A stretch of 64,000 nucleotides of DNA, from contig JAWQFM010000022.1 of the NCBI GenBank assembly GCA_033442325.1, forward strand, positions 712,746 to 776,745, read 5' to 3'. The translations under genes were made by a program, and so were the position numbers. Numbering within the stretch: the stretch's first letter is position 1; each line of letters opens with the position of its first letter. Of the stretch, positions 1 to 12,397 are shown piece after piece. This DNA comes from Salpingoeca rosetta. Taxonomy: Eukaryota > Protista > Choanoflagellata. Under the pieces are notes generated by a model. That model was given only the letters and a program-made list of their open reading frames with translations. It ran no database searches and was not told where the DNA came from.

Positions 1-942
1 CAGCCATTGGAGCAGTCGTCGTTGTTTCGTTTGTTTGGGTTGTTGAAGAATTGATGAAATTTTCCACCTATTTTCTTCATTTCAGTCGAGGACTGAAGTC
101 AGTCTCGCGCTCTCATGGGCGGTGGTTGGTGAACGAAAGCGACAACGCTTGTCGTGGGCACTAAAAGGCCACCCTGAGGTCTGCTACAACCCGCCACAAA
201 AAAACAAACACAACAACAAAACAAAACACCAATCAAACCATTGGAGGTGAGCATGATGAGAGGATGAATGTGGAGGGGTGGAGGGAACAGGACATGCTGC
301 GAACGTGGGTGGGCATGCACGAATGCACATCCTCACAACGAACATGGTCAAGAAAGATGGGACCAAGGGACAAAGAATGCACGTGCGAACAAGCACACCA
401 AACGAATGCACGTTACATCATACACACAGGAATGTGCATACGCACATACGCAGGCGTACATACACACATACGCAGGCGTACATACACACATATGCAGTCA
501 TATATGCACATACGCGAACACAACAACACCCCCGGACAGCCCATGTTTCAAAACGCGCACACGGACGACGTTTGACGTACGCATGTCAAAGCTCTCCAGT
601 TGCTGGAGAAGCGCGTCCAGCTCTGCATATCAAACCAACACAACACCCCACCGTGAGTTGGCAGCATGCAAAGAGAGTGTGGCGGCAGCAGCATGGGCAC
701 GAAACAATCGTGGGCAGCGGCATGACAGTCAACCCCACAGCACAGCAGCACGACCACCAAGCACTACACATGCACACACACCAGCGTCCTCAGCGTCAGC
801 CATTGGAGCAGTCGTCGTTGTTTCGTTTGTTTGGGTTGTTGAAGAATTGATGAAATTTTCCACCTATTTTCTTCATTTCAGTCGAGGACTGAAGTCAGTC
901 TCGCGCTCTCATGGGCGGTGGTTGGTGAACGAAAGCGACAAC
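1..942 (+). repeat. Direct repeat: 1-146 identical to 797-942
   Basis: cagccattggagcagtcgtc...gaaagcgacaac occurs at both positions. The left copy is cut by the window edge. Confidence 0.95.
147..803 (-). CDS. 5' fragment of a protein with an N-terminal LD motif (paxillin-like LDxLLxxL), truncated by a duplication junction
   Basis: ATG at 803. Exon 803-782 (MADAEDA, GTGTGT donor), exon 622-581 (ELDALLQQLESFDM, CAG acceptor, GTACGT donor) and probable exon 161-147 (LPTTS). A second copy of the same ATG context is at positions 7-1, running out of the window. Confidence 0.55.
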
Positions 943-960
943 ACCTACAAGCAAGCAAGA

Positions 961-3942
961 ATGAGCGACAGCAAAGGCACCACCACCACTGCCACTGCCA
1001 CGACGGCAGCACATGGGCACGGGTCCAACGGGCAGGAACCCTTTTCACAGCAACAACCACAACAGCTGTACCAGCAGCAACAGCAGGAACAATCACAACA
1101 ACAATCACAGCAGCCGCAACAGCCGCACCAGCAGTCACAGCAGTTTGCAAGCGACGAAGATGAGTTTGAGACGCACACGTTTCCAAACGCCAGCTTTCGG
1201 TTGGAAAAGCGGTTCAGACCAGACAAGATTGTCGGGTATGGCGCGTACGGCGTGGTGTGTGCTGCAACAGACACGGTGAGCCAGCGCCGCGTAGCCATAA
1301 AGAAGATCTCATCCGCATTCAAACTGCCGGAGATGACAAAGCGCACGCTGCGCGAGCTGCGGTTCCTGCGCCACTTCCACTCCCACAAGAACATCATCTC
1401 CGTCCTCACCATCGCCAAGCCGCCATCGGACCTGAGCCGCTTCAACGACATCTACGTCGTCATGGAGCTGCAGGAAACAAACCTGCATCGCATCATTCAC
1501 TCGAAGCAGCCGCTCTCCGAGGAGCACGTGCGCTACTTCATGTTCCAGCTTCTCAGCGGGCTGCAGTACATCCACGCTGCCAGCGTGCTGCACCGCGACA
1601 TCAAGCCAGGCAACCTGCTCATCAACAGCGACTGCTCCCTGAAGATCTGTGACTTTGGCATGGCCCGCGCAATGGCCAGTACCCCGGAGGAGCACGCGGG
1701 GTTCATGACCGCATATGTGGCCACGCGCTGGTACCGCGCACCAGAGGTGATGCTGTCGTTCAACCGGTACACGCAGGCCATCGACGTGTGGTCGGCGGCG
1801 TGTGTGCTGGGCGAGATGCTTGGCCGGCGCTACCTGTTCCCGGGCCAGGACTACATCCACCAGCTCGTGCTCATCCTCACGCTGCTGGGATCGCCATCTG
1901 CTGAGCTGAAACGGCGCATTGGTAGTGAGCTTGCACGGCGCTATCTTGACACCCTGCCACACCTTGACCCCGTCCCGCTTCGCCAAGTCTACAGAGACGC
2001 CAGGTGTGTGTGTGTGTGTGTGACGTGTGTGTGTGTGTTTATGTGTGTATGTGTGCATGTGTATGACGTGTGTATGTGTGCATGTGTGTGTGTGTGTACT
2101 TGTGTGTATGTGTTTTTGTGTGTACTTGTGTGTATGTGTTTTTGTGTGACACATGCATGTGTTGCGTTTAGATTCTGTGCGTGTGTGACGTGTGCCATGC
2201 ACAAAGCCTCATCCAGCCTGCAACCCCCGTGCCTTCCATTCCCTTGCCCCCGCCCCCAAACACCTGCCGTCGACAGTGACACCGTGCTTGATCTGCTGAG
2301 CAAGATGCTTCAGTTTGACCCCGCCCAGCGCTGCACCGTATCCGATGCCCTGCACCACCCGTTCTTCGCCAAATACCACAGCCAGATCCCATCGGCACCG
2401 CCGTCCGTGCCCGCCTTTGACTTTGAATACGAGGTGCGCGCGCGCGTGTGTGATTGTGTGATTTGTGTGATTTGTGTGATTGTGAGTAGCTGTGCATGCA
2501 TGTATGATTGTGTGCTTGTGTGATTTTGTGACTTTGATTGTGAGTATCTGTGTGTGTGTGTGTTGTTGTTGTTGGCTGCCTGTAACCCCTGCCTGTCTGC
2601 CATCTGTACCCGAGAAACGAACACTCGCACACGTGCATTTCAACTTGTGTCACCACGTGCAGAATCGTGCGACGACGGCTGCGGAGCTGAAGGACATGAT
2701 TGTGCAGGAGGTGATGCTGTACCACACACCAGGCACACCGGTATGACCGCTTCTGCTCATATTCACTCACATGATCGCCCTGACTTTGCATTTGTCCTCC
2801 GGCACGTTGCCTGGCATACACACTGTCCGTCGCACGCTGTTTGTTCTACGCCAACACATGGCCTCACCTGAACACGCCTTCGCTGCGGCCACAGGCATAC
2901 ATGAATGCCCAATTTGCTCTCGCGAAACGCACTGTCGTCCGCAGACCATCCAACCCGCCAACAGCAGCAGCAGCAGCATCATCGTCATCATCGTCGTCTC
3001 AAACCGGAAACACGCGAGCACCCGCAGCAGCGGCACCAGCAACAACGGAGAAAGCACCACGTGAGCATGGCGCAGCAAGTACCCGCAAACGCGAGGCATC
3101 ATCAACAATACCAGTAACAGGCGGGAGTGACGCGAGTAATGGTGGTGGTGCTGCAAGCCATGCAGGTGATGGCACACATGGTGGTGGTGGTGGTGGCGGC
3201 GGTGGTGGTGTACGCAGGAGCAGCGAGTCTGCCCACGAGCGGTTGAAGGCGATGTTGCGCAGCCGGCGGTCAGCGAGCAAAGAGCAGTCCCCACATGGGG
3301 TGGCAGCAGCAACAACAAGTGCAGTGATGACGGCGCTGTCGGGTGCGACGAAGACAACAAAGGCTTCAACGAAGAAAACAGGTGGCCGTGGCCTCGCTGC
3401 ACTTCAACAGCACGCAAGACAACAACAACAGCAGCATGATGTGGTGGGGTCTTCGGTATCCGGGGTAGGCGGCATTCAGGGCGCAGCTGCCAAGCGAACA
3501 GCGGCTGAGCGAAGCAATGAGCCTGCTCCAACACCGGCAACTGCGAGAACAGCAGCAACTGCGAGAACAGCAGCAGCAGGAGGAGGAGGAGGTGAGTATG
3601 GCACTGGTGCAGCTGTGATGGTTGGTGGTGACAGTGTTTCCACGACAACTGCAGTCCCAACAACGACAACAGCAGCAGCAACAGCAACAACAACAAGCGG
3701 GTCAGCCCCAACAACCACCGCAACTGTCACGACAACGGCGCCAGGGGTGGCATCGGCGGGAGACGTGGGTGGAGGCGACGAGCAGCCGCCGAAACGGAAG
3801 AAGCGCAAGGGCCGGCGACCGCTGAACAAAGCGTTGCACCCCGATCCAACGCCAGAGACACGCGCGTCTCTCGCAGAGTTTCGCCGTTACTTCCAGCGCG
3901 GCATGGTGTGTGCGTATGCGTTTGTGTGTGTGTGTGTGTGTA

Positions 3943-3973
<31 letters not shown>

Positions 3974-4386
3974 TTGTGTGTGTGTTTGTAAGCATGTGTG
4001 TGTGTTTGTTTGTAAGCATGTGTGTGTATGTGTGTATATGTGTGTATGTGTATATTTCGTGTATCGTGTATCCTGTCTCCTGTTGTGCATGGTGGGCTTG
4101 TCGGTTTGGTTTGTGGCCTGGACTCTGTGTGTGATATGCATGAGCCGCGTTACTTGACGCTCTCTCATCCTCATGCTGTCATCCTTCTGTTGTTGCGCTT
4201 CGATCCATATGCAGCAACAACCTCAACAACCCCAACAACAGCTGCTGCTGCAGCCAACACAGCCGCTGGTGTCACAATATGCACAGTTGTCTTCTGTCAA
4301 CGCCGTCACATCAACCGCCCCAGCAACAACAGCTGCTGCTGTTGTTGATGTGCTGACAACCGCGCGCCCAACAATGCCCGTGTACC

Positions 4387-4474
<88 letters not shown>

Positions 4475-4628
4475 GTCACCCATGCTGCCGTCATTCCCGC
4501 TGCCGATACCATTGCACCAGCATCAACAGCAGCACCTGCGCGGCACCAATTCGCCCACCACACGCTTCAGCCCCCTCTTCGACCCTGGAGGTGCGATTGC
4601 GCAGTCACTCCTGTGTTGTGATTTGTAA
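961..4628 (+). CDS. MAPK7: Mitogen-activated protein kinase, ERK5 (MAPK7)/Slt2-like, with a long low-complexity C-terminal tail
   Basis: Kinase motifs GYGAYGVV, VAIKKI, KRTLRELRFLRHF, HRDIKPGNLL, DFG and FMTAYVATRWYRAPEVMLSF. Exons approx 961-2003, 2277-2433, 2663-2740, 2895-3905 and 4215-4590/4628 join in phase. The 3' end may continue into the gap through a GTGCGA donor at 4591. Confidence 0.85.
4388..4475 (+). repeat. (CAA)n polyglutamine tract in the MAPK tail
   Basis: About 29 CAA/CAG codons. Confidence 0.9.
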
Positions 4629-4762: not shown

Positions 4763-5632
4763 NNNNNNNNNNNNNNNNNNNNNNNNNNNNNNNNNNNNNN
4801 NNNNNNNNNNNNNNNNNNNNNNNNNNNNNNNNNNNNNNNNNNNNNNNNNNNNNNNNNNNNNNNNNNNNNNNNNNNNNNNNNNNNNNNNNNNNNNNNNNNN
4901 NNNNNNNNNNNNNNNNNNNNNNNNNNNNNNNNNNNNNNNNNNNNNNNNNNNNNNNNNNNNNNNNNNNNNNNNNNNNNNNNNNNNNNNNNNNNNNNNNNNN
5001 NNNNNNNNNNNNNNNNNNNNNNNNNNNNNNNNNNNNNNNNNNNNNNNNNNNNNNNNNNNNNNNNNNNNNNNNNNNNNNNNNNNNNNNNNNNNNNNNNNNN
5101 NNNNNNNNNNNNNNNNNNNNNNNNNNNNNNNNNNNNNNNNNNNNNNNNNNNNNNNNNNNNNNNNNNNNNNNNNNNNNNNNNNNNNNNNNNNNNNNNNNNN
5201 NNNNNNNNNNNNNNNNNNNNNNNNNNNNNNNNNNNNNNNNNNNNNNNNNNNNNNNNNNNNNNNNNNNNNNNNNNNNNNNNNNNNNNNNNNNNNNNNNNNN
5301 NNNNNNNNNNNNNNNNNNNNNNNNNNNNNNNNNNNNNNNNNNNNNNNNNNNNNNNNNNNNNNNNNNNNNNNNNNNNNNNNNNNNNNNNNNNNNNNNNNNN
5401 NNNNNNNNNNNNNNNNNNNNNNNNNNNNNNNNNNNNNNNNNNNNNNNNNNNNNNNNNNNNNNNNNNNNNNNNNNNNNNNNNNNNNNNNNNNNNNNNNNNN
5501 NNNNNNNNNNNNNNNNNNNNNNNNNNNNNNNNNNNNNNNNNNNNNNNNNNNNNNNNNNNNNNNNNNNNNNNNNNNNNNNNNNNNNNNNNNNNNNNNNNNN
5601 NNNNNNNNNNNNNNNNNNNNNNNNNNNNNNNN
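4763..5632. other. Assembly gap (N run)
   Basis: N characters, with (TG)n on the left and (CA)n on the right. Confidence 1.
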
Positions 5633-5690
<58 letters not shown>

Positions 5691-5707
5691 CACAACACAC
5701 ACACACC

Positions 5708-7218
5708 GTTGCGCTTGAGTTGGCAGGACCGCCAAAGTCAAAGGTAAAGGCCACGGGTTTCTGTTGTTGCAATGACGGGCACCAGCCAATGCCATACCGG
5801 TTAGAGCGCGATTGAGAGATGCGTTTTGGTTAAGGTGGAGTTGGGATCGAGGTAAACGTTCCGCGTACAGAAAACAACAAGCAGCATTGTGCGCACAAAC
5901 GGTCGAAGACAAACCATCAACAGCAAGTGTGTGTGTGCGTGTGTGTAAACGGTTGCCTTTGAATCTGCAGATGCACACACACGCGCGCGCGCGCGCACAC
6001 ACACACACTCATGTGAACAGCTGTGCTTCTTCACCTTGACTGTTTGCCGCTGCACTGCCGTCTCCTGCACCGTACGCAGGGGCTCTGTGTACACATGCGC
6101 ACACGCGCACACGCAAGTGAGGCGAAGTTGTACATGAGAACTCACGTGCTGCAGATGATGACTCGCTTGAACAAAGCAACGCACATGGCGCAGGCTATTA
6201 CACACAAACATGCATCCACACAAAACACGCAGGTACACGGACACGCACACACGATGTGTTCGCAGTGCGCACCTCGTGGGGAGCCGATTGCGGTTGCAAA
6301 CGGAGGAATGTTCGTCGTGGCCTTTCCCCATGCCTTGCGGCGAGTGTCAAGCTTCGGCTAAAGTGAAGAAATGTGGTGCGAGAATGACACGATCACACAT
6401 GGGGGTCAAATGGCATGCAAGAGACAACCCGAAAGCGTCACACTCCCATGCAGCCAAACAGCCTCTCAGACACACAGCTGGTCTACACAAGCTGCTGGTC
6501 ATGCCACACAAACACACACGCACGCAAGCTTTTGCGGATATGCATGTGCACATGCGCGTGTACGCATGTGCACATATACACGCACCTCTGGTGCATCCAA
6601 CTCTGCCTTCTTCGTGGCCGGTGCTGCGTTGATGAAGTTTGTTGTCTCGAGGAAGTTGCTCGAGCGGAGATGGGGTGGCAGCGCAGCCTGCAGGAAAACA
6701 ACAGGAGTGTGAAACAGAGTGCGAGACAGACAGATGTAAGGGTGGACGTTGGTGTTATCACCAACATGGGATGAGAATGCCACAGTGTGACATACAAGAC
6801 ACGACACACACGCACACACGCGCGCGCACACACACACACACATACACACGCACATACATATACACACACTCGGATACACACACTCACCCATACCCATGCT
6901 CACACATATGAAAGCGCACAATTGCACACGAGCGAAGCATGCAAAGAGCAGGTATGTGCATGGGTGCTCGTGGAAGTCTCACGTTACGGCGCTTGAGTTC
7001 TTCAATTCGGCTGTCATCTGTCGGCTTGTAATAGTCCTTGCTTTGTGTCTGCTCCGCCCACGCCTGGCGGTGGTGCCGGGGGCCGGGCATGCGAGCCTCT
7101 TGTTGCTGTGGCGGCCGTGATTGCTGTGCTTGCAGCGGACTTGGCTGTGCGTGCGTGTGTTTGAAAAAGCGTGTAAATTCATATGTGTGTGTGTTTGCAA
7201 GGATACTTGCACAGAACA

Positions 7219-7255
<37 letters not shown>

Positions 7256-10027
7256 ACAAAGGGTCGCACAAAACAAGTGTGTGCGTCCTGACAGCATCAA
7301 AGTGGAAGGGCGGCAAGTGCATGACCCAAGCAGGTCTTCGAAGCAACCAAGACATCACGAATTGCATATACTTGACCGAAATTACCTGATGCTGTGCAGC
7401 AAGCTCACGGCGCATGTTCATGCTTGACTTTGGCGTGCTGACCTGGGCAACCGGCGTCTACATTGAACACAACCACCCGTGACACACATGTATGTGGTTT
7501 GCTGCTGAGTGTTCCAGGCCACAATGGCGGTTGCACAGACAAGACAAACCTAGTACACACCGCTGCGCTCGCTATGTTTCGCTCATCATGTCAACTTCGC
7601 ACGCATCTCCCAATTGCATGCGTTTGCATGGCATACGCACGCATTTGCACGTGTGCGCACGTCTGCACCCAATGTTCACGGCTCACATAGCTTACCGTGG
7701 CGGGAGATGCGTTGCGGCTTGCTTGTTTGAGCATCTCGGTCTTGCGCACCTCCACCTGCGTCTCGTGCTTGAGGCGTTCAATCAGACGGTTGTAATCGCG
7801 CAGCAGCAGCGTGTTCTGCTTCTTCTTTCGCGCCAATTCCTCCTGCGCGTCTGCCAGCTGCTGTTTGAGGTGGAACACCTGTGCCTGCGCTTCTTCCACG
7901 GCCTGACTGTTCTGTGAAGTGCTGTCTTGCTGCGCTTTGAGCTGGCTGCGCAGCTGGGCGTTTTCCCGCTCCGCCGCAGACACGCGCGCGCGCATGCGTG
8001 ACTGCTCAGACTGCAGGTCCTCCAGCTGCGCGCGTGTTGCTGCCAGTCGCTGCGACAGCGCATGCATCTCATCCGACTTTGCGGCGTTGTCGCTCGTGAG
8101 CGCCTCCACTTGATCCTCCAACTCCCGCACGCGTCCCGTAGAGCTCACCGCCTGTATCATGCGTCAGATGTGCGTACATGTGCCAATGTATGTGTCCATG
8201 CATGAGTCAGATGTGTGTTTCGGACAGGTACAGTCTGCGTGAGCACACCACAGAAGTGTGGTGGGGAGCACATGAGCACACACACACATCCAAACACATA
8301 CACGTACACACATACATACACACACACACACATCCAAACACATACACACACGCACGCACACACAAACACACGTACACACAGTAATTCCCAAAGTACAAGG
8401 GACACCTCCACTTGTGGCACACCTTCATCTGGTGCTGAGAGCAAGCGGATTTGTACTGCTCGCACGATTCCTGCAACTCGGAGATGGCTTGCTTCATTTC
8501 GTACTCCTTCACCTCAAACTCCTGTGACATCTGCAGCAGCCTATGGCACACAGCGAACCATGTGACACGCCAGCATACAACACGCGTGAGAAAAAACGGC
8601 TTTGTGCATCATGTGTGGTTATGTTGTGTTTGTGTGCGTGATTATGTTCTGCGTCAATATGCCAAATTGTATGCCGTGTGTGTGTGTGTGTGTGGATTTG
8701 TGAAGTGTGGCCGTGCGAGTGAATACGTCCTTCACTCCATCAGAACCAAAGATATGCGTTGCAAGTACCTGTCTCGCTCCTGCGACATGGAGGACACTTC
8801 TGCTCGCAGCTCGTTCAGGCTTGTGCGCAGACGCGCGTTGTCTGCCTCAAGTTCGGCTGCGTCGCTCTGCTTGGTCATGGCCTCCTGGCTCACTTGCTTC
8901 TGCACCACCGCCAGCTCTGCCTTGAGGGACTTCACCTGCGCCTCTGCATTCTCTGCCGCGTTTCTCTGGCCAAGCAAACACAAGAAACCGGTGTGTGCAT
9001 GCATGGATGTGTGAAAGGTGAGCATGTCAATTTGACACTGACAAGTTGCAAAAACCACAAATCGTGGTATCAGCGTTTTCACAGCTGCGTACACACAGCC
9101 GCACACACAAACAAACAAACAAACAAACAAACAAACAAACAAACAAACAAACAAACAAACAAACAAACAAACAAACAAACAAACAAACAAACAAACAAAC
9201 AAACAAACAAACAAACAAACAAACAAACAAACAAACAAACAAACAAACAAACAAACAAACATGCACACAAAACCTATTTTCAGACACCCATTTACACGTG
9301 GTGCAACTTACCCATGCTGAGAGCTCTCCCTCGAGCTCGCTGACACGTGTGCGGTCCTTCTGCAGCTCAGAGATGCGGCGGCGCGAAGACGACTCCTGGC
9401 ACTCCAACTTCTTCGCCAACACCGCCTTCTCCTCCTGCATGCGGTCACGTGCTTCAAGCGCGTCGCTCAGTTGGCGCTCAACAACACGCAGCTGGTCCAG
9501 CTCCTCGTTGGCGTGCTCCAGCTGCCGCTTCATCCTGACAACACACGCACATACACACATGCAGGCGATGTTGGGATGATCGTAAGCCAGGCGCAATTCA
9601 GTGGGTATGTGTGGATGTGTGCATGGGTATGTGTGTATCCTTTTGTGTGTGTGTGCGCGTGTGTGTGCGTGTGTATATGTATGCATGCGTGCATGCATGA
9701 ATGACAAAACTTTGGGAAAATGGTGCGAATTACTACAGCGTGTTGCACAAACATCTAGAAAGACACAAGCAGCCCCAGTTCAACACCATACCGGTCAAAT
9801 CTTCCGCGCACATCACGCAGCTCGTCGAGTTCCGTCCTGGCGTCCTCCAACTCCGCCTCAAAGCGATCAGCACGCTCAGCCTATTGATGGCGGATTGGTC
9901 GGTGTTCGCAGTGTGTGACGTGAGTTCGTGAGGTGGGGTGACAGTAGGGGTGCAGAATGAAGCAGGCATGGTGCAAGCATGTGTGGCTGATTGTTGACAT
10001 GTGGTGTTGCGTCAAAGCACAAACAGC

Positions 10028-10082
<55 letters not shown>

Positions 10083-10664
10083 CTCATGTCGTGAGCGTCA
10101 TTGCGAAAGCTCACCTTGATTGTGAGTGCTGCCACTTGCGCACTCCTCTCCTTCAGTTCTTCTTGAAGCTCATGCAGCTCTGCAACCAACCAAAAAAAAA
10201 AAAAAAAAAGACACCGGCAGATGTCAGCCACGTGAGGAATACCGAATACTTTTGAACCTCACGTCACAACTGAGACGAGGGCATTCCATACATGCGTGCA
10301 GAGCTGTACTCGCAACAGTCAAACGCTCACCTTCGCGGAGATCGTCGTTCTCAGTGTTGACGCGCTGTGTGTGGGGCCAACATGCCAGCAGGCAGCAATG
10401 ACAGGTAAACCAAAGTGTCAGCAAGCGGTTCAATTGTACATGCAAAGGCAATTGTTCACAAGTACACGCAAGGCAATGGTTCACAGGACCTCAAGCATCA
10501 CATGGGCACACAATGCATAACCACCTACAAGCGCAACACAACACACCCACACGCACGCGCACGCCACATACCACCCAACACATGCACATGTACACACAAC
10601 ACGCACGCCACACACCACACAACACAAACACACACACACGCACGCACGCACACACACACACACG

Positions 10665-10710
<46 letters not shown>

Positions 10711-11459
10711 CGCACACACCTCGAGGGCGCGCTTTGCGGCCTTTCGTGAGGAGATTGGTGTGTGGAGCAGGCGGTGCTGGTGGGGCGTGCGGAGCAGGCG
10801 GTGCTGGTGGGGCGTGCGCACCATGCAGCGCGAAGGCGGACGCATGCTGCCAACACGTGACGTGGGTGTTTGCGGCGTCTGTGGCCGACCGGGCATGCTC
10901 ATGCTCATGCTCATGCTGAGGGGGTCGCTGTGGCTGGCGTGGCTGTGGGCACTGGGTGACGCCGGTGACTGTTGGTCTGGTGACTCAGCGCCCATCTCTG
11001 GAGTGAGCAGCGATGCAGCGAGCTCACGAAGACTTTCGAGATGCTGCACGTGCTCGTCAGACATGTCTTGCAGCGCACTGAACAGTACAAGCAGGCACAT
11101 GGCAATGTGGTGATGTGAGGATGTGAGGGTGTTGGGTGTGTGTTGGTGTGTTTACTGCGCAAAGTCTGCGCAAATACGAAGCGAGAGAGAGAGAGAGTGT
11201 GTGTGTGTGTGCGTGAGTGTGTGTGTGTGTGTGCTCGGATTAAACACAGTGCTAACTCACTCATAGTATTTGATAGGCGCCTTCTCGTCGAGGGAGGCCA
11301 GGGTGAGGAGAGCAATCATCTGTAAAGCCAAAGTAACGGCAACAGCATAGAGGTGTCGGAGGGAAGGAGAGACGTGAGTGTAAGTGAGAGCGCATGCATG
11401 CGCCAGTTCATGCATGTGCACAAGCACCGACCACTGTGTGCGTTCACGCAAGGACAATT

Positions 11460-11517
<58 letters not shown>

Positions 11518-12397
11518 ACACACACGCAAATACCATAAATCCAACAAAACTTACGCACACACACACGCACAGGCTAACACAGCACCTTGATGATTTCTGC
11601 AGCGTTTCCTTGCTCAATTTGGTCTGTGTGAATGTGACCTCCAAGTCGCATTTCAAAGCATGCCTCCAGAATGGCCAAGACGGTCTTGCAGCTGCTCTCG
11701 CGCTGAGGCACAGGTGACTTCCAGCAGCTGAATGGCAGAGCAAGGAAGAAGGTTTGTGTGTGTGCGTGTGTGTGAAGGGGCGACGCTTGGCCACACATGT
11801 GAGTGGGTCGAATTAACTTGGGCGCATAAAACACTCATCGAGAGCCGCACGCATCTTGCACACAGAAGCGCAGCGCCAAATACAACCACAACCACAACCA
11901 CAACCACAACCACAACCACAACCACAACCACAACCACAACCACAACCACAACCACAACCACAAATACAATCACAAATACAATCACAAATACAATCACAAA
12001 TACAACCACAACCACAACCACAACCACAACCACAAATACAATCACAACCACGACCACACATAAACAAAACAAACACGGCTATTGCCACTCACATGGTGCG
12101 GGCCTCTTCCTCAAGGATCTTGCAGTCTGCAAGCGCAGTGAGGCTGCTGATCTCCTTGCCAGAGATCTTTGTCAGCTGCAGTATGGTTCATGATTAGTTT
12201 GTTGGTCGTGCCGTGTTGTGTTTGTAGTGAGAGGGCAGGAGCGTGGCTATGGTTCGCACGTGGTTGTTGCTGGAGACAGTCTGTACCGACACAGTGGCAT
12301 CTGGAGATGTTGCTATTGCGACGGCGCTGGTCACGCATCGATGCTCTTAGCATCGTGTGCTTACCCAGTCGATGAGGCAGGTGGTCATCTGCTCCAT
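5708..12397 (-). CDS. NuMA/Mud/LIN-5-like protein: HOOK-type CH head, coiled coil and NLM motif; 3' end lies in the gap
   Basis: Head exons: 12397-12365 [11 protein letters not shown]; ~12177-12092 [28 protein letters not shown]; ~11723-11587 ...[14 protein letters not shown]; ~11319-11261 [19 protein letters not shown]; ~11077-10720 SP/TP-rich. Coiled-coil exons lie between ~10360 and 7696. Tail exons: 7144-6983 ...[12 protein letters not shown] joined in phase 0 to 6687-6586 [14 protein letters not shown]...; 6064-6035; 5760-5708 KPVAFTFDF. Confidence 0.75.
9108..9260. repeat. (CAAA)n tetranucleotide microsatellite, intronic
   Basis: About 38 perfect units. Confidence 0.95.
11463..11515. 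repeat. (GA)n microsatellite, intronic
   Basis: Seen directly. Confidence 0.95.
11883..12056. repeat. (CAACCA)n/(CAAATACAATCA)n hexamer satellite, intronic
   Basis: Seen directly. Confidence 0.9.

Follow-up and report, generated by a model that had tools for sequence, protein, structure and literature searches.

A probable compact member of the NuMA/Mud/LIN-5 family encoded by the choanoflagellate gene PTSG_08124

The window analyzed in this study, a stretch of 64,000 nucleotides from the choanoflagellate Salpingoeca rosetta (assembly GCA_033442325.1, contig JAWQFM010000022.1, positions 712,746 to 776,745 of the forward strand), carries the gene PTSG_08124, whose product is probably a compact dynein adaptor of the NuMA/Mud/LIN-5 family. 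With about 800-900 amino acids (aa), this protein is about the size of LIN-5 of Caenorhabditis elegans and combines a predicted Hook-type head, a linker rich in serine/threonine-proline (S/T-P) sites, a coiled-coil rod, and a basic tail with a sequence resembling the motif named NuMA-LIN-5-Mud (NLM). An initial annotation of this DNA had described the product as a NuMA ortholog hidden across microsatellite-filled introns, and the present results support the NuMA interpretation in part.

The exon set was drawn by GT..AG borders on the minus strand read from 12700 to 5400, and its 18 exons (Table 1) join into a single stop-free open frame of 794 aa, which starts with an ATG at 12397-12395 and runs to the end of the last visible exon at 5707. 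Expression was assessed with two raw stranded RNA sequencing (RNA-seq) runs and with the transcript contigs of two other studies, the reads being placed on positions 5708-9106. Eight junctions were recovered (5760/6035, 6084/6273, 6357/6586, 6686/6982, 7144/7386, 7457/7696, 8150/8422, and 8539/8768), all of them CT..AC on the plus strand, which is equivalent to GT..AG on the minus strand. At 8966, loose ends carry the terminal sequence of exon 9, and their consensus gives the junction 8965/9312 between exons 9 and 10, so that RNA-seq backs the last nine junctions of the model (exons 9-18). The depth of the intron bins is zero, and nearly all first mates map to the plus strand, as expected when a standard stranded library is made from a minus-strand mRNA. 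For exons 1-9, which encode the head, the junctions are backed by canonical splice sites, by the open frame, and by the identity of this part to the public gene model. The intron at 6688-6982 interrupts the NLM-like motif, and the use of its junction 6983/6687 in transcripts had been set beforehand as a test of the initial annotation; this junction (6686/6982 in the reads) is supported by 20 reads, 17 and 3 in the two raw runs, and by two contigs, one in each contig set. PTSG_08124 is a genuine, expressed gene, and its transcripts use the junction within the motif.

Other parts of the initial annotation were also borne out. The sequence strings that it quoted are all present in the product (LIDWLTKI at aa 8-15, the others at aa 23-32, 79-96, and 686-711), the SP/TP-rich linker and the coiled coil are real, with ten S/T-P sites within aa 131-213 and a proline-free segment at aa 214-616, and the supposition of a choanoflagellate host was correct, the public protein being PTSG_08124 of S. 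rosetta. The protein cannot be called hidden, because its spliced product has been in public databases for years as a hypothetical protein without an assigned function (XP_004991145.1, UniProt F2UI24, 783 aa).

The relationship with NuMA was traced first through the tail. Residues 686-711 align without gaps over 26 aa to the human NLM string and score 62 with BLOSUM62. In 20,000 shuffles this score was never reached, the maximum being 51, and the Gumbel p of the match is ~2e-6 per protein or ~0.02 per proteome of ~11,700 proteins. The human counterpart of the first half of the motif, DDWNRIAELQQRNR, is found exactly at the end of PDB 6hc2_B, and the first 14 residues of the human NLM are confirmed by 6hc2_B and 3ro2_B together. 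When this PDB-confirmed half (NuMA 1915-1928) was compared with the whole protein, its best match fell at aa 686-697 (score 33, p ~0.01). Of the features shared by NuMA, Mud, and LIN-5, the NLM is found at aa 686-711, as judged from a two-sequence comparison with the human string, and the central coiled coil is found at aa 214-616, at about one quarter of the human rod length. Previous studies have indicated that the NLM lies within microtubule-binding domain 1 of NuMA (PMC8047419) and that it is the only stretch obviously conserved in sequence between the vertebrate and invertebrate members, the Pins-binding region not being conserved in sequence even between the fly and vertebrates (PMC12505299).

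At the opposite end of the protein, the ESM Atlas model of residues 1-135 was most similar to a NUMA1 fragment cluster, with a template modeling (TM) score of 0.78, followed by HOOK_N (0.74) and HOOK3 (0.73), and unrelated clusters reached at most 0.39. The nearest cluster to the head alone by language-model features was HOOK_N (0.91), with 192 of 256 features shared. These predictions provide good evidence that the head adopts a Hook-type fold. They also bear on the explanation that PTSG_08124 encodes an unrelated coiled-coil protein, whose Hook-like head would be a generic helical bundle and whose motif matches would be due to chance. This explanation would account for the blank result of every formal sequence search, for the low confidence of the AlphaFold2 single-sequence model, and for the lack of a verdict from a complex prediction with the helix from dynein light intermediate chain (LIC); however, three independent Hook-domain clusters standing well above all others, the features in common with HOOK_N, the collinear motif matches described below, and the shuffle test passed by the NLM make it very improbable.

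For a motif-level comparison, human pieces were each aligned against all 794 residues with shuffles. The NuMA pieces 11-40, 90-109, and 211-240 are exact in PDB 6qja_A and 9hhl_1, and 6b9h and 5j8e contain the two HOOK3 pieces letter for letter. The first NuMA piece found its best match near the start of the head, and the equivalent HOOK3 piece did not align at the equivalent position, its best score being no better than that of shuffles (Table 1). The helix at aa 79-91 matched NuMA and HOOK3 about equally, and it is therefore considered general to Hook domains. The two NuMA head pieces and the verified half of the NLM match the protein collinearly and where they would be expected to (aa 8-31, 79-91, and 686-697), and at the level of motifs the comparison of the head leans toward NuMA.

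The beginning of the rod offers a further point of comparison. The last of the ten S/T-P sites is T212-P213, where the rod begins, and the first 30 rod residues resemble HBS1 of NuMA, with a basic stretch followed by the acidic segment D232-D233-L-R-E-E-L-H-E-L. The coiled coil of human NuMA has been reported to start at the conserved P212, preceded by the conserved T211, S200-P, and S203-P (10.1101/2025.07.19.665708, 10.1101/2024.11.26.625568), and its acidic patch (DELELE) at 231-240 contacts the dynein heavy chain (10.1101/2024.11.26.625568, 10.1101/2025.07.19.665708). The human rod-start sequence is confirmed in PDB 9hhl_1, and the acidic patch D232-L241 of S. rosetta lies at the same spacing after T-P as the human one. 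Human NuMA 211-240, set without gaps at aa 212, scored 30 and ranked second among 764 placements. This likeness of the rod start to NuMA, which was partly drawn post hoc, is regarded as suggestive. The layout from head to rod appears to fit NuMA and not HOOK, and HOOK proteins are not known to have a long S/T-P linker, their coiled coil beginning directly after the Hook domain. The Pfam matches of the rod, for single exons as for the whole public protein, are to generic coiled-coil families only. Sequences of the Spindly type (L-x-x-E-hydrophobic) occur at aa 355 (LEGEL) and aa 432 (MSQEF), from which no conclusion is drawn because such patterns are common in the rod.

The predicted Hook-type head could also belong to another kind of Hook-domain dynein adaptor, namely a lineage-specific relative of HOOK/CCDC88 with a different cargo, in whose tail the NLM-like sequence would have arisen by convergence or chance. 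By whole-protein language-model features, the nearest clusters are fungal and animal HOOK proteins (0.94, 0.93, and 0.93), as HOOK_N is the nearest for the head alone; a length of ~800 aa is usual among HOOK proteins, HOOK3 fits the helix at aa 79-91 (26) about as well as NuMA does (27), and the NuMA-specific Pfam profile has no match. However, PF05622, the coiled-coil family of HOOK, has no match to PTSG_08124 at E <= 10 and instead matches two collinear exons of a separate S. rosetta gene on G000:C30, one of them with 37 bits and an E-value of 2.3e-9, above the curated cut-off and with no other Pfam family near. The species thus probably has its own HOOK on another contig, and PTSG_08124 is therefore a second protein with a predicted Hook domain and a coiled coil which, by this distribution of PF05622, is apparently not the canonical HOOK. 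The long S/T-P linker and the failure of the first HOOK3 piece to align also speak against a HOOK/CCDC88 relative, and the NLM-like sequence, expected ~0.02 times per proteome by chance, occurs in a protein of the Hook-plus-coiled-coil type, of which there are few. Taken together, a HOOK/CCDC88 relative is considered unlikely, although clearly less so than an unrelated coiled-coil protein. The introns of the probable HOOK gene were seen to be full of microsatellites and homopolymer-codon runs.

Assignment of PTSG_08124 to the NuMA/Mud/LIN-5 family has to be weighed against a number of observations that count against it. Three homolog searches of the databases, one each for the head, tail, and whole protein, brought back nothing but PTSG_08124 itself, and significant homology to NuMA, Mud, or LIN-5 was found neither there, nor in Pfam, nor by phmmer against the PDB. 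The head had no match at E <= 10 to HOOK_N (PF19047) or HOOK_N_NuMA (PF21670), and phmmer with the head against the PDB at E <= 10 returned neither NuMA (6qja, 9hhl) nor HOOK3 (5j8e, 6b9h). The PDB holds NuMA 1-157 (6qja), an 889-residue N-terminal NuMA fusion chain (9hhl), and the NuMA peptide of 6hc2; phmmer of aa 195-300 against this database did not find NuMA, nor did phmmer of the tail, though the 6hc2 peptide ends at DDWNRIAELQQRNR. The AlphaFold2 model of the head, computed from a single sequence without an alignment, had a poor predicted local distance difference test score (pLDDT 46), and its Foldseek rows against the PDB were meaningless. The NuMA cluster ranked 26th (0.89) by whole-protein language-model features, below HOOK. 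In the rod, the best gapped match of human NuMA 211-240 lies elsewhere, and Q215, near the start of human HBS1, is unmatched in S. rosetta. In the tail, the acidic LGN-binding stretch that precedes the vertebrate NLM has no counterpart before D686. Furthermore, confirmation of the human NLM string by the PDB covers its first 14 residues, the second half being taken as V-C-P-P-H-L-K-T-C-Y-P-L-E.

The claim of a NuMA ortholog stands in some parts and not in others: the NLM beats shuffles and the head is Hook-like by predicted structure, but no NuMA sequence or profile is matched and any placing of the head among the Hook subfamilies is tentative. The prediction that the head would match the profile of the NuMA Hook domain failed at E <= 10 (PF21670), and that of a significant NLM match held for the whole string, with p ~0.01 for the PDB-confirmed half alone.

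Comparison with known systems showed that S. rosetta PTSG_08124 and human NuMA (NUMA1, 2115 aa) appear to have in common an N-terminal Hook-type head (predicted in S. rosetta); an S/T-P linker ending in T-P at 211/212 (212/213 in S. rosetta); a rod start in which a basic stretch is followed, at the same spacing, by an acidic patch; and a C-terminal tail of basic character in which the core R-I-x-E-L-x-x-R-N-x3-P-P-H-L ... L-E is present. They differ in the rod, which has ~400 residues in S. rosetta and ~1500 in human, and in the acidic LGN-binding stretch before the motif, which S. rosetta lacks; no nuclear localization signal, second microtubule-binding domain, or clustering motif was identified in the visible S. 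rosetta protein, and the relationship was undetected by any sequence search. Compared with HOOK1-3 (Pfam HOOK_N plus HOOK), the protein is alike in its predicted Hook-type head, its presumably dimeric coiled coil, its size class (~700-850 aa), and its nearest language-model features, and unlike them in having no PF05622 match and in having the long S/T-P linker and the NLM-like tail. LIN-5 of C. elegans, with 821 aa, is alike in size and shows that a family member of ~800 aa can be functional. For LIN-5 and Drosophila Mud, the recognized invertebrate members, the comparison draws on published descriptions, in which the N-terminus of Mud carries an InterPro Hook domain and, in arthropods, a single exon holds the NLM and stops at the last K/R of the motif (PMC12505299). 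In S. rosetta, by contrast, an intron splits the motif after R-R-N, and the end of the human exon is inferred to lie ~16 residues later, exon 24 starting at 1944 (PMC8047419).

Table 1. Coordinates of PTSG_08124, of its parts and motif matches, and of other features considered (window positions unless another sequence is named)
Feature	Location	Strand	Details
Whole visible gene, PTSG_08124	5707..12397	minus	18 exons, GT..AG at every border
Exons 1-6	12397-12365, 12175-12093, 11727-11586, 11319-11261, 11077-10720, 10364-10331	minus	
Exons 7-12	10179-10115, 9880-9792, 9534-9312, 8965-8769, 8540-8423, 8151-7696	minus	
Exons 13-18	7457-7386, 7144-6983, 6687-6586, 6357-6273, 6084-6035, 5760-5707	minus	
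Head, aa 1-132	10999..12397	minus	Exons 1-4 and start of exon 5; Hook/CH-like, acidic, helical
Linker, aa 133-213	10756..10998	minus	Disordered, basic, isoelectric point (pI) 11.8; candidate sites for cyclin-dependent kinase (CDK)
Coiled-coil rod, aa 214-616	7705..10755	minus	403 residues, proline-free, only 3 Gly
C-terminal tail, aa 617-794 and beyond	5707..7704	minus	Basic, pI 10.3, holds NLM-like motif
NLM-like motif, first half, aa 686-697	6983..7018	minus	End of exon 14; human counterpart DDWNRIAELQQRNR
NLM-like motif, second half, aa 698-711	6646..6687	minus	Start of exon 15
NuMA 11-40, best match	aa 8-31		L..W ... L.DC.I; score 31, p ~0.03
HOOK3 piece equivalent to NuMA 11-40			Not at equivalent position; score 21, no better than shuffles
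NuMA 90-109, best match	aa 79-91		Score 27
HOOK3 matching helix, best match	aa 80-91		Score 26
Assembly gap	4763-5632	none	870 N, between (GT)n and (CA)n runs
S. rosetta gene, probably the canonical HOOK	G000:C30:594484-598746	minus	PF05622 matches
Dynein light intermediate chain (LIC) gene of S. rosetta	G000:C7:1173540-1176853		Helix-1 exon at L016:1495-1607
Sources of the 165-aa metagenome protein	ENA ERZ840577 contig; MDTG01096312.1		ERZ840577 contig of 885 nt

The public 783-aa protein was found by an exhaustive HMMER search with exon 12, which corresponds to its residues 468-619; the rest of what that search returned was coiled-coil noise, and F2UI24 stands alone in its 90% cluster. A six-frame genome search with the PF19047 and PF21670 profiles gave no match, as expected for short exons, and a metagenome scan with the public protein gave none either. 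For the tail, the ESM Atlas yielded nothing usable. One candidate ortholog, a 165-aa metagenome protein with 41% identity to exon 12 over 88 residues (E 1e-6 among 1.8 billion proteins), was rejected: the metagenome contig that encodes it is short, and the second half of the protein maps to a contig of 71% GC that is probably bacterial. This case shows that similarity between coiled coils can mislead far. The precomputed label of PTSG_08124 as PF24161 (CCDC39) was likewise discarded as coiled-coil noise. The presence of a presumed partner adds to the case for a NuMA-like protein: the LIC gene of S. rosetta was located, and its C-terminal helix-1 exon reads VLANFFNSLLQQK, which is presumably close to helix 1 of animal LIC1. 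A complex prediction for the head and this exon gave a score of 0.02, which has no bearing on binding either way. An ortholog of Pins/LGN has been reported in choanoflagellates (PMC8576264).

The public protein and the present model are identical over aa 1-759 and diverge after that. RNA-seq contradicts the public model, which lacks the 6084/6273 junction, in its final 24 residues (GAHCEH...KQSR): within 6035-6272 of the window, reads and contigs use 6273/6084 and 6035/5760, giving ...GSPREPLRTVQ..., stop-free up to the assembly gap. The end of exon 18 meets a (GT)n run, and the gap of 870 N comes next. A transcript contig of 2,693 nt spans the mRNA and extends ~313 nt past exon 18, and the true C-terminus and the 3' untranslated region are therefore placed in the gap or just past it. 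TTG/CTG runs abound in the minus-strand sequence at 2600-4560, which suggests that a convergent neighbor gene on the plus strand, containing long poly-Q (CAA/CAG) tracts, ends near the gap.

Some minor features of the transcript data were also recorded. At 6330-6632 and 7429-7725, contigs cross introns at a depth of 9-12, compared with 850-1600 for the spliced form; therefore, a small share of the transcripts is unspliced, or some DNA was carried over. Two intronic islands of ~20 nt, at 5927-5946 and 6505-6526, have high read depth on both strands, with joints between them of the 'opposite strands' kind and loose ends into (GT)n/(CA)n; ~90% of the reads show A>C at 6511. These islands look like reads from a multi-copy, microsatellite-flanked element located elsewhere and not like transcript of this gene. 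A (GTTT)n repeat lies within the gene at 9107-9261.

From the observed gene structure, expression, splicing, domain layout, and motif matches, we infer the following binding steps and spindle role for a NuMA/Mud/LIN-5-type adaptor. The protein would dimerize through its ~400-residue rod, and the start of the rod, with T212-P213, the basic stretch, and the acidic patch, would contact the dynein heavy chain and dynactin. Ahead of the rod, the S/T-P-rich linker would likely act as a CDK switch, and the basic tail with its NLM-like motif may bind microtubules. In this way, dynein could be coupled to microtubule ends at the spindle poles and possibly at the cortex.

A full-text literature search found no paper naming a choanoflagellate NuMA or PTSG_08124. 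In a review of NuMA the family is regarded as an animal one; yeast Num1 counts only as a functional analog, and plants have no member (PMC8047419). Pins/LGN and Dlg have been traced back to choanoflagellates (Pins/LGN: PMC8576264), and if PTSG_08124 is a true ortholog, the spindle-orientation set would have been complete before the origin of animals, and the NuMA-dynein module would predate them. A broader and more tentative possibility, which we regard as somewhat doubtful, is that the unicellular organism from which choanoflagellates and animals descend already had the whole module in a compact form, with a Hook head, a CDK-type linker, a proline-capped HBS1-like rod start, and a microtubule-binding NLM tail, and without the LGN-binding peptide. 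If this is true, pole focusing would be ancestral and the cortical coupling through LGN and G-alpha-i a later animal addition, and the rod would have grown about four-fold toward vertebrates. A rod of ~400 residues also bears on the length of coiled coil that is required for dynein-adaptor function. In S. rosetta, rosettes arise as cells divide serially, and both editing and transfection are possible, so that which came first, pole focusing or cortical pulling, becomes a testable question in this organism.

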